A stretch of DNA of 64,000 nucleotides from Saccharolobus islandicus REY15A (lineage in GTDB: Archaea; Thermoproteota; Thermoprotei_A; Sulfolobales; Sulfolobaceae): assembly GCF_000189555.1 (NCBI RefSeq), contig NC_017276.1; one strand, written 5' to 3'. Both the position numbers and the translations under genes were made by a program. Of this stretch, positions 37,784 through 54,873 are shown in pieces; the first letter of the stretch is position 1, and every line of letters starts with the position of its first letter. A model generated the notes under the pieces. It made no database searches and had not been told where the DNA came from. It worked only from the letters and a program-made list of their open reading frames with translations.

Positions 37784-38210
37784 ATATTCATTTTCTTTAT
37801 CCAGTATTTAAGGATTGTTAATATACGTGCTTTGTTGAATACTTCAATTTTCTAAGATGTTAAGCTCATCAATTTTTCTTAAATTTAAAATCGAACGTCG
37901 ATTTAAAAGTAAGTTCCACGTTAACTCAGATAAAAATTGAACAAATCCACAAAGCATAATATACGCGTTCATAACTACCTCAAGGCTCCAACCAGATAAT
38001 ATTTTACAACCTTAGTTAATTCTAATATGGGAGTTAACGCATAGAACTTTATCCTTATCACGTTAATAAGTGATATCTACCGTTATAAGGAGAAAAATGG
38101 ATGACGAGGACCTAATTCAAAATAGAGTGATAATTGGATAGACTTGGTAGTTGTTATCCTTGTTTATAAAGTCAATTGAAATTCAAGTGAGTGTGGACAT
38201 AGTGTCGTCA

Positions 38211-38533
38211 TTAAGCTACAAATTCTGGGATTAACCTTCTCTCCAATAAGACTAGGGCTATGGAGTACATCATGGTACTAATGCTCCTATTTACTGCCTT
38301 CGTTGCTCTCTTGAATCTAATTAGCCTATCCCTTAATGAGGAATGAAAGGACTCGTTCGGGTTAACTGGCGAGACAACCGTGTGGTCTTTCAACCAGAAG
38401 TACAAGTTATAATCATCGCTCACCCATCTACCCTCGTCAAGCAAATACTTTTTGACCTCAAGGAAAGTACTCTCATCCCTATCCCCCACAGAGTAAATGA
38501 GGTAAACTCCCAGCTTCGTGTAAACGTAGCAAG
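38211..38533 (-). pseudogene. IS1 transposase, 3' fragment
   Basis: TCYVYTKLGVYLIYSVGDRDESTF...SDDY...NESFHSSLRDRL, the DDE region. Confidence 0.85.
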
Positions 38534-38556
38534 TGAAAACCTATATAGGTTTTATT

Positions 38557-38695
38557 AGTCGGGGAGAGTAATACTCTCCTCGACTGGGGAAACATGGTCG
38601 AAAGTAAAACTGAAGCAAAGTCTTCGGAAGTGGGCGTGACCAACCCCTACCGTCGGACTGAACATTGTGGAAAAATCCACCGATATAGGTGTGAC
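38557..38695 (+). ncRNA. Predicted IS110 bridge RNA
   Basis: 5' hairpin 38557-38585, then two loops of the form GTC..ACTGAA..hairpin..8-nt guide..GTGAC; the guides are complementary to the target flank and to the donor end. Confidence 0.65.
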
Positions 38696-39667
38696 AAAGG
38701 GGTAGGGGTAATAGGAATAGACGTATCAAAAGATCATTTAATTACAAGTAGGGGGAGGGTGAGAAAATACAAGAACAACAAGAAGGGTTATGAGGAAATC
38801 CTCAAGATGAAACCTTGTACAATAGTTTTAGAGCCCACTGGAGTTTACGCAATAAGGCCTTGCCAATACTTCAAGGAGAAAGGAATAAAAGTACTACAAG
38901 TTAGCCCAAACATACTATCGAGGGAGAAGGAGTTTAGGGGAAAGAAAACAGATTTTTACGACGCTGAAAAATTAGAAAATATGGTTGATAAGGCTAAGGA
39001 GTACGAGTATAACCCCTTAAGGGAATTGGTAACACTCTACCTCTTCCTAAAGGACATAGAAGTAAAGTATAGGAACAGGCTAAAGAGGGCACTATTCCTA
39101 GTAAGTGATAATGACAAGATAAGCAAGGAAAGGTTGGAAAAACTTGCAAAGGGAGATTTTACACAAGAAGAACTCTACCAACTTGAATACACACCAATAG
39201 TGCTTGAGGAGATCAAAGTCCTAGCAAAAACACTCCTAGAAACGCAAGAGAAATTGGAGGAGGTTAGGAGGATGATTGAGGAACAAGTTCCTCAAGATCA
39301 CGTTTTATTATCAATACCGGGTGTTGGGAAGCTTGCAGCTGGGGTTATTATTGGTATTGTTGGTGATATTAAGCGTTTTCCTAAACCGGAATCATTTATT
39401 GCTTATTGTGGTCTCGATCCTCTTGTTGAGAGGAGTGGGAAAGTTGTGGTAAGCAAGGGTATTTCGAAGAGGGGTAATAAGTACTTGCGTAGTTTGTTTT
39501 ACTTTTTGGCTGAGATGAATTACTCTAAAAACCCTACTTTGCTGAAGTTTTATGAAGCGCACAAGGATAGGCTTCAAGGTAAGAAGTTGTATACTGCATT
39601 GGCTAGGAAGTTGGCTAGGATTGTTTGGAGTGTTTGGTATAATAATAAGCCTTATGAGCCAAAGTGA
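38594..39667 (+). CDS. IS110 recombinase (DEDD + Tnp20)
   Basis: GIDVSK, LEPTG, KTDFYDA (D-E-D-D), SIPGVG, CGLDP, ARKLARI; true start uncertain. Confidence 0.93.
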   Translation: MVESKTEAKSSEVGVTNPYRRTEHCGKIHRYRCDKGVGVIGIDVSKDHLITSRGRVRKYKNNKKGYEEILKMKPCTIVLEPTGVYAIRPCQYFKEKGIKVLQVSPNILSREKEFRGKKTDFYDAEKLENMVDKAKEYEYNPLRELVTLYLFLKDIEVKYRNRLKRALFLVSDNDKISKERLEKLAKGDFTQEELYQLEYTPIVLEEIKVLAKTLLETQEKLEEVRRMIEEQVPQDHVLLSIPGVGKLAAGVIIGIVGDIKRFPKPESFIAYCGLDPLVERSGKVVVSKGISKRGNKYLRSLFYFLAEMNYSKNPTLLKFYEAHKDRLQGKKLYTALARKLARIVWSVWYNNKPYEPK

Positions 39668-39769
39668 TTGAAGTTCCCTCCCCCGAATCGCCACGTGGGT
39701 TGAAAGGACCCACGTGGCAATGTTAGTTGACACTATGCTTGAAGTTTGACCGAAAGGTTTATTACTGAA

Positions 39770-40164
39770 CGCCCACTTGTAAAAAGCCCTAGTATTCTTG
39801 TACAAGTAAGTCCACATCTCATCAACAACCTTAGCAACAACACCACCCTTGACCAGCTCCTTAGCCTTACCCCACAACTCAACTTCTGCCCACCATACCG
39901 CTTAATCCAAGTGAACACAGTACCCAAGGGGACATTCAAAACCCTAGAAATGGCTCTCATACTCATACCATTAGCATACATTTTTAAAGCCTCCTCCCTC
40001 AACTTCTTGGAATGATGATGGTAAGTAGCATCACCCAAGAAGTATCTACCGCAATCCCTACACAAATACCTCTGCCTACCCAAAGGCCTACCACACTTAA
40101 CAACATGATGACTACCACAAGAGGGACAAGAAACGTCTTGCCTAACTACAGCCTTCCTACCCAT
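39770..40164 (-). pseudogene. IS1 transposase, 5' fragment (frameshifted)
   Basis: CPSCGS..CRDC zinc finger, HTH GMSMRAISRVLNV; frame break after GGQK; resumes LWGKAK..VDEMWTY..FYKWAF. Confidence 0.85.
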
Positions 40165-40559
40165 AAGTAATACTCGTTATACAAATATAAATAGCTTAAC
40201 GACGACACTATCACCACACTCATTCAAGTTATTAGCACGAATAATCCAATATATTATATAAAAATGGATTATAAATCAAAATTTAGTACATAATATCCAG
40301 AAAACACCAAGAAATATCACGAATAGATTACTGTAAGCTATATCAATCTGAACTTGTGATGACCTAATTTGGTATACGTATTCATTATATATAGTGTTTC
40401 ATCAACGTATTTATCTAAATATCTTTAGTGATCATCGGTCTTAATTCAAATGAGGTTTGTTAATGTACTCAAGACCAGTTTTTGACAGTGGTTAAGCTAC
40501 TATATTTATAGTAGATTATTACTTATCAATTTATAGCGTAAAGCTTCTAATACTTGAAG

Positions 40560-53857: not shown

Positions 53858-54873
53858 CATAGTGCCATCATTAGCGTATAAATATTTGTAATACAAATAT
53901 TATTTATGGGAAGGCATTACATGCCATGCCTCTAATAAGCCTAGGTTTGCAACCGTAGGAGGAAGCTTGTAATTAGGGAAGACTTAGCATGTCCTTCTTG
54001 TGGTAGTCATCATGTTGTTAAGTGTAGTGGGTCTTGAGACAAGCAGAAGTATTTGTGTAGGGATTGTGGTAAGTACTTCTTGGGTGACGCTACTTACCAT
54101 CACCATTCTAGGAAGTGGAGGGAGTGGCTTTGAAAATGTATGCTAATGGTATGAGTATGAGAGCTATTTCCAGATTGCTTAACGTACCTCTAGGTACCGT
54201 GTTTACGCGGATCAAGCGTTATGGCAAGTAGAGGTATGATAGACCTGTGGACTTATGGGGAAAGGCTAAGGATTTGATTAAGGGTAATGTTATTACTAAG
54301 GTTGTTGATAAGATGTGGACTTATTTATATAGGAACGCTAGGGCCTTCTATAAGTGGGCGTTCACTCGCTACGTGTACACTAGTATTTCCATTAAATTTA
54401 TAGTCTAGTATTATTTGATAAACTAATTATGAAAATTATAGTTATACAATATTGGCATTGATGAGTACGTTCACCCTAATGAGTTAATCCTTTTTATCTC
54501 AAATTCATTAGGAACTTATTAACGAATGATGGAGTGCAAAAATTTTCTGGAAATACTAACGAATCTGGGTTTTTACCTCATTTACTCCGTTGTTGATAGG
54601 GATGAGAATACTTTTCGTGAAATTAAGAGATATCTCCCAGATGGTGGTAGGTGGGTGATGATTATAACTACTACTTCTGGTTAAAGGACTATACAGTAGT
54701 CTATCCCGTTAATCTCAACAAGCCACTACACTAATCATTAAGGGATAGGGTTAGGTTCAAGAGGGCTACGAAGGCTGTTAATAGGAGTTGTCAGATGATG
54801 AGATATTCTATAGCAATAGTCTTATGGGACGGAAAGTTGATCCCTGAATTTATACCCTAATGACGAGACTATG
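53858..54873 (+). mobile_element. Degenerate IS1-family element (ISC796-like) with pseudogenised transposase
   Basis: Imperfect TIRs CATAGT..TCATTAG(C/G)GTATAAAT; CPSCGSHHVVKC and SLRDR-like remnants with stops and frameshifts; homologous to the 38189-40221 copy. Confidence 0.85.
54381..54558. mobile_element. MITE-like insertion (178 bp)
   Basis: Perfect 11-bp TIR TAGTATTTCCA/TGGAAATACTA (17 of 19 when extended), flanked by AC duplication, non-coding, interrupts the IS1 copy. Confidence 0.8.

Follow-up and report, generated by a model that had tools for sequence, protein, structure and literature searches.

Organization of the locus

The locus described here lies in a 64,000-nucleotide stretch of the Saccharolobus islandicus genome (the window) and consists of an IS110-type element inserted into an element of the IS1 family. 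The IS1-family host occupies positions 38189..40221 on the minus strand, measured from terminal repeat to terminal repeat; the repeats (GACACTATNNCCACACTC) are found at 38189-38206 (minus strand) and 40204-40221 (plus strand). An InsA-like ORF of the host (39733-40164) encodes a zinc-ribbon/HTH protein (Pfam Zn_ribbon_InsA/HTH_23). The host transposase gene is recognized by NCBIfam NF033558 (IS1 family transposase, E = 4.8e-22), with a score below the cut-off because the IS1 transposase is truncated. Reading the frame across the joined flanks places the insertion in the DDE part of this transposase, with the break inside ..AFYKW|VFTCY... In S. islandicus CP002426.1, the ortholog of the window lies at 98.6-103.7 kb.

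The inserted element (38542..39773, plus strand) comprises 1232 bp including one copy of the crossover core, starts with TATATAGG and ends with TTATTACTGAACG-CC. Its two ends, TATATAGG.. and ..ACTGAACG, do not form inverted repeats, and there is no target duplication beyond the dinucleotide CC. It is the only copy in the 64-kb window, where no further copies or fragments were found. The single long ORF (38594..39667, plus strand) encodes an IS110 DEDD/Ser recombinase of 357 amino acids with the domains DEDD_Tnp_IS110 (PF01548, 32.9 bits, cut-off 29) and Transposase_20 (PF02371, 87.6 bits). With 192 bits, the protein also exceeds the cut-off of 140 for NCBIfam NF033542, "IS110 family RNA-guided transposase", and the profile begins at residue 39; this "RNA-guided" label is already attached, generically, to ISC1229-type proteins at NCBI. 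When aligned to the solved ISCro4/IS621 structures (PDB 8wt6/9t56), residues D43, E80, D120, D123 and S281 sit in the catalytic motifs, whose roles in an IS621-type recombinase have been described (PMC11208158). The nearest relatives (74-96% identity) are proteins of Saccharolobus, Sulfurisphaera and Acidianus, one of which (P0038) is annotated as "Second ORF in transposon ISC1229". We therefore refer to the element as ISC1229-type.

A second, degenerate IS1-like copy within the window (minus strand, 54351..54372) retains the uninterrupted paralogous target, GTAGCGAGTGAACG-CC-CACTTA (also written AGCGAGTGAACG-CC-CACTTA). About 10 bp from this empty site the same copy carries an insert of approximately 178 bp (54381-54558) with terminal inverted repeats TAGTATTTCC / GGAAATACTA, which looks like a MITE.

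For comparison, 60-65 related loci (denoted by L numbers below) were assembled from 3 species genomes, 49 hot-spring metagenome contigs and 13 look-ups of exact proteins in complete genomes. The look-ups returned one or two places per protein, and the scan of species-genome contigs yielded 3 loci only. A pattern scan of viral contigs returned no ISC1229-type loci. Structure and variability were assessed on an alignment of 37 distinct left ends.

A conserved RNA fold at the left end

The left end of the element folds into three consecutive units. A 5' stem-loop of 13 bp, including one G.U pair, spans 38557..38585 (plus strand) in the minimum free energy structure. It is followed by a target-binding loop (38597..38640, plus strand), in which a basal stem GUCG/UGAC encloses the guides and a distal stem-loop at 38611-38626, and by a donor-binding loop (38644..38708, plus strand) with an outer stem CCCCUACC/GGUAGGGG, an inner stem GUCG/UGAC and a distal hairpin at 38667-38680. 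The segment 38537-38720 has a minimum free energy of -74.8 kcal/mol, compared to -45.7 +/- 3.7 for dinucleotide shuffles (z = -7.82, equalled by 0/200 shuffles). In the alignment of 37 distinct left ends, the proposed pairs form in 97.2% of cells, against 37-51% when the partner is slid, and compensatory (double) changes are seen at 8 pairs; none of 500 shuffles attains these pairing and compensation values. The compensatory changes include four pairs of the 5' hairpin, which is replaced by unrelated hairpin sequences in L055-57 and in L012/L031. Within the donor loop, pair 127/170 has changed from G-C to A-U in 8 sequences, and a pair of the distal hairpin from A-U to G-C in 10. The basal and distal stems of the target loop are invariant and paired in 37/37 sequences. 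An Rfam scan of the region gave only noise, with no family matched at E up to 10.

Both loops have a fixed layout in the motif table. Loop 1 begins with GUCG and ends with GGCGU and GAC; in between, variable blocks of 10 nt and 6 nt flank the conserved hairpin UGAAGNAAAGUCUUCG on its 5' and 3' side, respectively. Loop 2 consists of GUCG, GACUGAAC followed by AUU, a hairpin, NNAUAUAGGUGU and GAY. The only hypervariable parts of the left end, across the 37 distinct sequences, are the two sides of loop 1.

An earlier note on this DNA, made from the sequence of the window alone, had proposed a 13-bp 5' hairpin followed by two loops in the order known from IS621. All strings that it quoted were found in place by direct reading, and hairpin and order stand after comparison with the related loci. 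The note had both loops closed by GTC/GAC and framed by a common ACTGAA. The closure is correct (GUCG/UGAC at 38597-38600/38637-38640 and 38652-38655/38692-38695) but the common frame is not: ACTGAAC in loop 2 is the left donor guide, and CTGAAG in loop 1 forms the 5' strand of the distal stem.

The donor loop and the crossover core

Loop 2 is nearly invariant and matches both ends of the element. Its left guide GACUGAAC (GACTGAAC as DNA; 38656..38663, plus strand) contains ACTGAAC (38657-38663), identical to the right end at 39764-39770. In its right guide CGAUAUAGGUGU (38681..38692, plus strand), AUAUA pairs with TATAT of the left end and GG pairs with the core, so that AUAUAGG is complementary to CC-TATAT at 38540-38546. 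The earlier note had pointed to ATATAGGT (38683-38690) as the reverse complement of the element's own end ACCTATAT (38539-38546), which is borne out. Both donor guides are invariant in all copies outside the L063/L064 variant.

The position of the crossover follows from the comparison of empty sites of four target classes with the corresponding junctions. For example, a target ..GAGGGAAACA-CC-ACTACC.. and a donor ..ACTGAACG-CC-TATATAGG.. give the products ..AAACA-CC-TATATAGG.. and ..GAACG-CC-ACTACC... The base that separates AAC from CC goes with the left-hand partner, which puts the core at CC; its left copy lies at 38540..38541 (plus strand), and the right end (39764..39773, plus strand) consists of the left-donor tip ACTGAACG and the right core copy CC (39772-73). 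The tip is kept in nearly all copies examined; L063 and L064 have an extra T (ACTG, ACTGAACTG). Right junctions otherwise always read ACG, and the left junctions of group 1 read ACA, as in the empty site. Two other cores were considered and rejected. TGAA, the core of the earlier note, is common to both junctions of the window copy because the IS1 site shares TGAACGCC with the right end of the element; this string is shared only at the present target, and other targets share only AAC-N-CC. The crossover CC lies 4 nt to the right of TGAA. The related observation that the 8 nt preceding GTGAC have the same register from the junction in both loops holds, with the empty sites moving the core itself from TGAA to CC. 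A core AC, suggested by L001 with guides ending in ..AAC and ..GU, fails on the polymorphic base of AAC-N-CC, which stays left in both products.

The 3' ends of the right-hand guides behave like the handshake guides described for IS621 (PMC11208158). UGU at the end of the right donor guide (38690-92) is of the handshake type and pairs with the ACA that closes the left target, and across lineages these bases covary: UGU accompanies left targets ending in ACA (group 1), and GGAGU accompanies ACT (L063/L064). The corresponding CGU of loop 1 fits the right-end ACG in nearly all copies; in L063/L064, where CTG takes its place, the fit is imperfect (G only). The register of the left guides relative to CC differs among lineages. 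In L063/L064 the 5' guides cover the core (..UUUUACUCC); in most lineages they stop short of CC by 1-2 bases or reach no further than its first C.

Two loci carry partial ends next to a copy. At L057:1927-1950 a left-end stub, a right-end tip and a full copy follow each other as AAGTAAAAA-CC-TATATAG-AACG-CC-TATATAGG, and in the right flank of L010 (~1805-1830) the right end is followed by CC-TATATAGGTTTT. These junction remnants suggest tandem or donor-junction intermediates, or insertion beside a resident copy.

Target guides and their covariation with the flanks

Loop 1 follows the strand arrangement published for IS621 (PMC11208160). Its 5' block repeats the sequence of the left flank in the same orientation, and its 3' block is reverse-complementary to the right flank. 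The left target guide GAAAGTAAAAC (also written GAAAGUAAAAC; 38600..38610, plus strand) copies the left flank across lineages and, being in the sense of that flank, would therefore pair with the bottom strand. The right target guide (38627..38637, plus strand) consists of GAAGTG, which pairs with CACTT(G), then GG for the core, and CGU (38635-38637). The earlier note had described AAGTGGGCGT (38628-38637) as the exact reverse complement of the right target flank ACGCCCACTT (39769-39778). The complementarity is exact, but only CC and CACTT derive from the target; the ACG of this 10-mer is element sequence because it ends nearly every right end. With at most one mismatch, AACGCCCACTT has 3 occurrences in the window, against 0.39 expected; they fall in the loop, at the right junction and in the uninterrupted IS1 paralogue. 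The note had also offered AGCAA of loop 1 as a hint to the left guide. This candidate was dropped: AGCAA lies within GAAGCAAAGUCUUC, the conserved distal stem-loop, and the guide is GAAAGTAAAAC.

The association of guides and flanks was evaluated by collapsing near-identical sites and permuting flanks among guides (22 left pairs, 17 right pairs). Left guides agree with left flanks at 6.1 of 9 positions on average, against 4.3 after permutation (p < 1e-4); for the variable 6 nt of the right guide the values are 2.8 and 1.9 (p = 6e-4). Left guides reach at least 8/9 in 8 of the 22 classes. By lineage, the left guide agrees with the flank at 9/9 in group 1 and at 8/9 in six other classes. Individual loci include L001, in which left guide GAGAGGGAAAC fits ..GAGGGAAAC.. 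at 9/9 and right guide GGTAGTGGCGT fits ACGCCACTACC at 11/11; L060b (left 8/9, right 11/11); L007 and L044 (left 8/9); L064 (left 9/9); and L063, whose right target fits at 6/6. Insertion of other copies at sites unrelated to loop 1, the outcome that the earlier note had named as speaking against its proposal, is, given these p values, not what is found statistically, and single copies vary. Several copies (L002, L012, L058, L062) match on one side or not at all. These may be chimeric metagenome contigs, products of recombination between copies, half-match insertions, as have been described for IS621 (bioRxiv 10.64898/2026.08.31.748434), or decayed sites. The S. solfataricus ISC1229 copy (L062) is of this kind; neither guide fits its flanks, which together form an inverted repeat (TGTGCGAGGG / CCCTCGCACA).

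In the window copy, the right side fits at CC and CACTT: the right target CACTTG (39774..39779, plus strand) is complementary to the variable block of the guide at 5/6 bases. The left target GCAAGTGAAAA (38529..38539, plus strand), directly left of the core as judged by the empty paralogue, matches the left guide at only 7/9, one base off the register of the best-matching lineages, and the left junction reads AAA-CC against ACG-CC in the empty paralogue. IS1 hosts at other loci read AAGTAAA.. and are nearer to the left guide than the host in the window; in all sampled hosts AAGT is separated from CC by five bases, where the guide would want six. The left mismatch may be a tolerated one, may reflect an unsampled IS1 variant or may be the result of decay.

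Recurrence at the same site of IS1-family elements

The guide pair of the window, GAAAGTAAAAC / GAAGTGGGCGT, is found at the same IS1 position in four genomic contexts (the window and L055, L005, L056, L057), and L058/59 occupy this site with variant guides (left GATATACTAAC, right GAAGTAGGCGT), which brings the recurrence at this site to at least five contexts. The IS1 hosts in L056, L057 and L058 are 75-87% identical to the host in the window, while their ISC1229 copies are 91-95% identical. Since the hosts have diverged further than the elements, the latter are younger than the split of their hosts, which argues for separate insertions into IS1 lineages that had already diverged. In a sister lineage (L060b, L037, L038/51, L053), the guides match the IS1 terminal repeat, GACACTATC-N-CC-ACACTC, at 11/11; the ends of the IS1 host in the window are empty sites of this terminal-repeat type.

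At L060:270-3180 a single IS1-like host carries two ISC1229 subtypes, one at the internal site and one in the terminal repeat. At L055:1942-3178, the orthologous locus in another S. islandicus, the IS1 flanks are 98-99% identical to those in the window, but the inserted copies share only 94% identity and differ in the 5' hairpin, which points to gene conversion between copies or to independent insertion at the same site. At L001:2880 and 2949, as well as at L015:2672, the targets CACGGGCA-CC-CCTCTT and GAGGGAAACA-CC-ACTACC of two other guide lineages lie about 70 nt apart in a short, repeated non-coding element; no ORF was seen close to the repeated element in which the group-1 and L007-type targets lie.

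The RNA within the recombinase reading frame

The recombinase frame opens with the ATG at 38594 (the base of loop 1) and crosses the entire RNA, such that its first 37 codons overlie both loops and changes in the guides would alter residues 3-6 and 12-13 of the protein. The only other canonical in-frame starts before the motif IGIDVSK are GTG 38630 and GTG 38636. The frame through the RNA is open in 30 of the 37 distinct left ends; the remaining seven break it yet keep the RNA structure. Variable sites outside the guides fall on codon positions 1, 2 and 3 in numbers of 4, 9 and 10. With no excess at third positions and with frame-breaking variants that keep the fold, a conserved N-terminal protein extension was rejected as an account of the left end.

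A more distant relative bears on the origin of this overlap. ISC1190-like IS110 elements of the Sulfolobales (P0048 group, L065) encode a recombinase 42% identical to that of the window. The left end of L065 resembles ISC1229 in its TATA-like start, ATTAGTC, 5' hairpin, ACUGGGG and two loops, and its donor guide ACCGGAAG equals its own right end, as in ISC1229. Unlike ISC1229, its 316-aa ORF starts at an ATG behind the RNA. Because L065 combines the same RNA layout with a normal downstream start, the overlap of RNA and frame is derived in ISC1229, whose frame begins inside the RNA for want of the segment with the post-RNA ATG. We tentatively suggest, and would give this less than even odds, that the ISC1229 lineage lost an ancestral ATG behind the RNA and thereby came to hold its bridge RNA wholly within the recombinase frame, that one transcript serves as both guide and mRNA, and that sister lineages were retargeted to two IS1 sites. 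If this is true, the guides double as codons 3-6 and 12-13, so that each natural retargeting rewrites the N-terminal peptide of the enzyme, and retargeting to an internal codon block and to a terminal repeat would document how bridge RNAs have been reprogrammed naturally in a hyperthermophile.

Proposed mode of action and alternative explanations

The reading we favour, with a probability of roughly 0.88 on the sequence evidence, is that the left end of this ISC1229-type element (~38555-38708) probably encodes a bridge RNA of the IS621 type whose guides specify the site in the IS1 transposase gene. The boundaries of the element, the position of its core, the conserved RNA structure, the covariation of guides with flanks and the recurrence at one site are observed; production of the RNA, its binding by the recombinase and the chemistry of exchange are modelled on IS621. 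By this analogy, the DEDD/Ser recombinase would bind the bridge RNA, the donor loop would hold the joined ends of the excised element (..ACTGAACG-CC-TATATAGG..), and the target loop would hold a DNA site with a left half similar to GAAAGTAAAAC and with CC-CACTT as its right half. Strand exchange would take place at the CC common to target and donor, after which the 3' triplets of the right-hand guides (CGU and UGU) would pair with the partner DNA in the manner of IS621 handshake guides. The guides of the window copy would thus specify the part of the IS1-family transposase gene that encodes a conserved W-x-F-T segment, which the insertion splits. The suggestion of the earlier note that an RNA-guided recombinase is aimed here at another IS accordingly gains support from the covariation, from a loop 2 that matches the element's own ends and from the recurrence of the same IS1 site in several contexts.

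One could hold that the left end is nothing but the 5' coding region or leader of the transposase, that the protein picks the site, and that the matches between loops and flanks are by-products of the long shared core TGAACGCC. The ORF that crosses both loops and is open in most copies, together with the lack of a canonical start near IGIDVSK, is what such an account would expect. It fits poorly with the codon positions of the variable sites, with the compensatory changes in the stems and with the frame-broken copies that keep the structure; moreover, guides track unrelated flanks in lineages that have no long shared core, and in L065 the same RNA lies wholly upstream of the ATG. We consider it highly improbable. 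The recurrence at IS1 has another potential source, namely a single old insertion followed by spread of the composite IS1::ISC1229 through IS1 transposition in trans, in which case the recurrence would be uninformative about RNA-guided targeting. The IS1 parts of the window, L005, L055 and L060a are indeed 98-99% identical in different genomic contexts, as composite mobilization predicts, and mobilization by IS1 could therefore explain these four. That it explains the pattern as a whole is improbable, given the divergent hosts with closely similar elements in L056, L057 and L058, the 94% identical copy with a different 5' hairpin within the nearly identical flanks of L055, the fit of the right guide to the site, the sister lineage that with other guides sits in the IS1 terminal repeat, and the existence of empty IS1 sites.

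A different objection concerns the window copy only, which might be an inactive fossil that has its bridge RNA by descent, no longer transposes and has guides that no longer fit the site. The left guide with its 7/9 match and the left junction AAA, where ACG or ACA is expected, are in line with such a state. We nevertheless regard it as rather unlikely, because the ORF of 357 aa is undamaged and keeps every catalytic motif, no RNA stem is disrupted and near-identical guide sets occur in several intact copies.

Comparison with known systems

The ISC1229-type element shares with IS621 of E. coli (and with ISCro4/IS622) a DEDD and Ser recombinase, an RNA encoded at the left end, ahead of the catalytic domain, the sequence of 5' stem-loop, target loop and donor loop, and a 2-nt core common to target and donor (PMC11208160), as well as handshake bases located 3' of the core-pairing bases (PMC11208158). 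An IS621-style left end with a target-matching loop makes it an archaeal member of a known RNA-guided system and not a new kind. Differences are found at several levels. By sequence, only the C-terminal domain of the recombinase aligns well with IS621 (E about 1e-13). The core is CC instead of CT, the loops are symmetric with about 10-11 nt per side, the handshake block comprises 3 nt, and most 5' guides end in ..AAC and leave a gap of one base to the core. The recombinase reading frame contains the whole RNA, the element resides in a thermoacidophilic archaeon, and the natural target of the window copy is an IS1 transposase gene, whereas IS621 targets REP sequences.

Targeting of mobile elements is known in the IS110/IS1111 superfamily, where IS4321 and IS5075 insert into the terminal repeats of Tn21-family elements. 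The ISC1229 sister lineage (L060b, L037, L038, L053) resembles these two members of the IS1111 group in targeting the terminal repeats of another element, whereas the window copy targets an internal coding site. Unlike ISC1229, IS4321 and IS5075 are bacterial, carry a seekRNA downstream of the transposase and have subterminal inverted repeats. The ISC1229 RNA lies upstream and overlaps the ORF start, contrary to a seekRNA of the IS1111 type. An IS110 element with a bridge RNA that is known from experiments is CazIS110-1 of the bacterium Caloranaerobacter azorensis (bioRxiv 10.1101/2025.10.25.684509). Archaeal IS110 recombinases are acknowledged in the literature; in the literature searched, no paper on a bridge RNA of the Sulfolobales was found.

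The locus and its relatives extend the bridge-RNA mechanism, by sequence-level evidence, to the Sulfolobales, which grow near 80 C and pH 3. The ISC1229 family offers natural pairs of guides and targets together with empty sites and a covarying 3-nt handshake block, and is a clear case of one IS aimed at another, at a conserved codon block and at terminal repeats. The site preference of a long-known Sulfolobus IS is explained without change to the known mechanism, and a recombinase/RNA pair from a thermoacidophile could become a heat-stable scaffold.

Further features of the element ends

Subterminal inverted repeats were not seen in the element; the only repeat is a direct one, AGGTTT(T)ATTA, located near both ends (38547-38557 and 39755-39764), and both copies are BRE/TATA-like. 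Across the junction of a circular form, the right-end copy GAAAGGTTTATTA would lie about 26 nt upstream of position ~38554 of the left end, just before the 5' hairpin. This arrangement hints that the right-end copy would play the part of the IS110 junction promoter in an archaeon. The published Sulfolobus study of ISC1229 noted only binding by the CRISPR-repeat protein Cbp1, which is strong in the 3' flank of ISC1229 (PMC10883916), and an expected circular intermediate. The right non-coding end of the element contains a perfect 11-bp palindrome, GCCACGTGGGT-TGAAAGG-ACCCACGTGGC (39690-39718), whose loop GTTGAAAG is similar to the end of a Sulfolobus CRISPR repeat.
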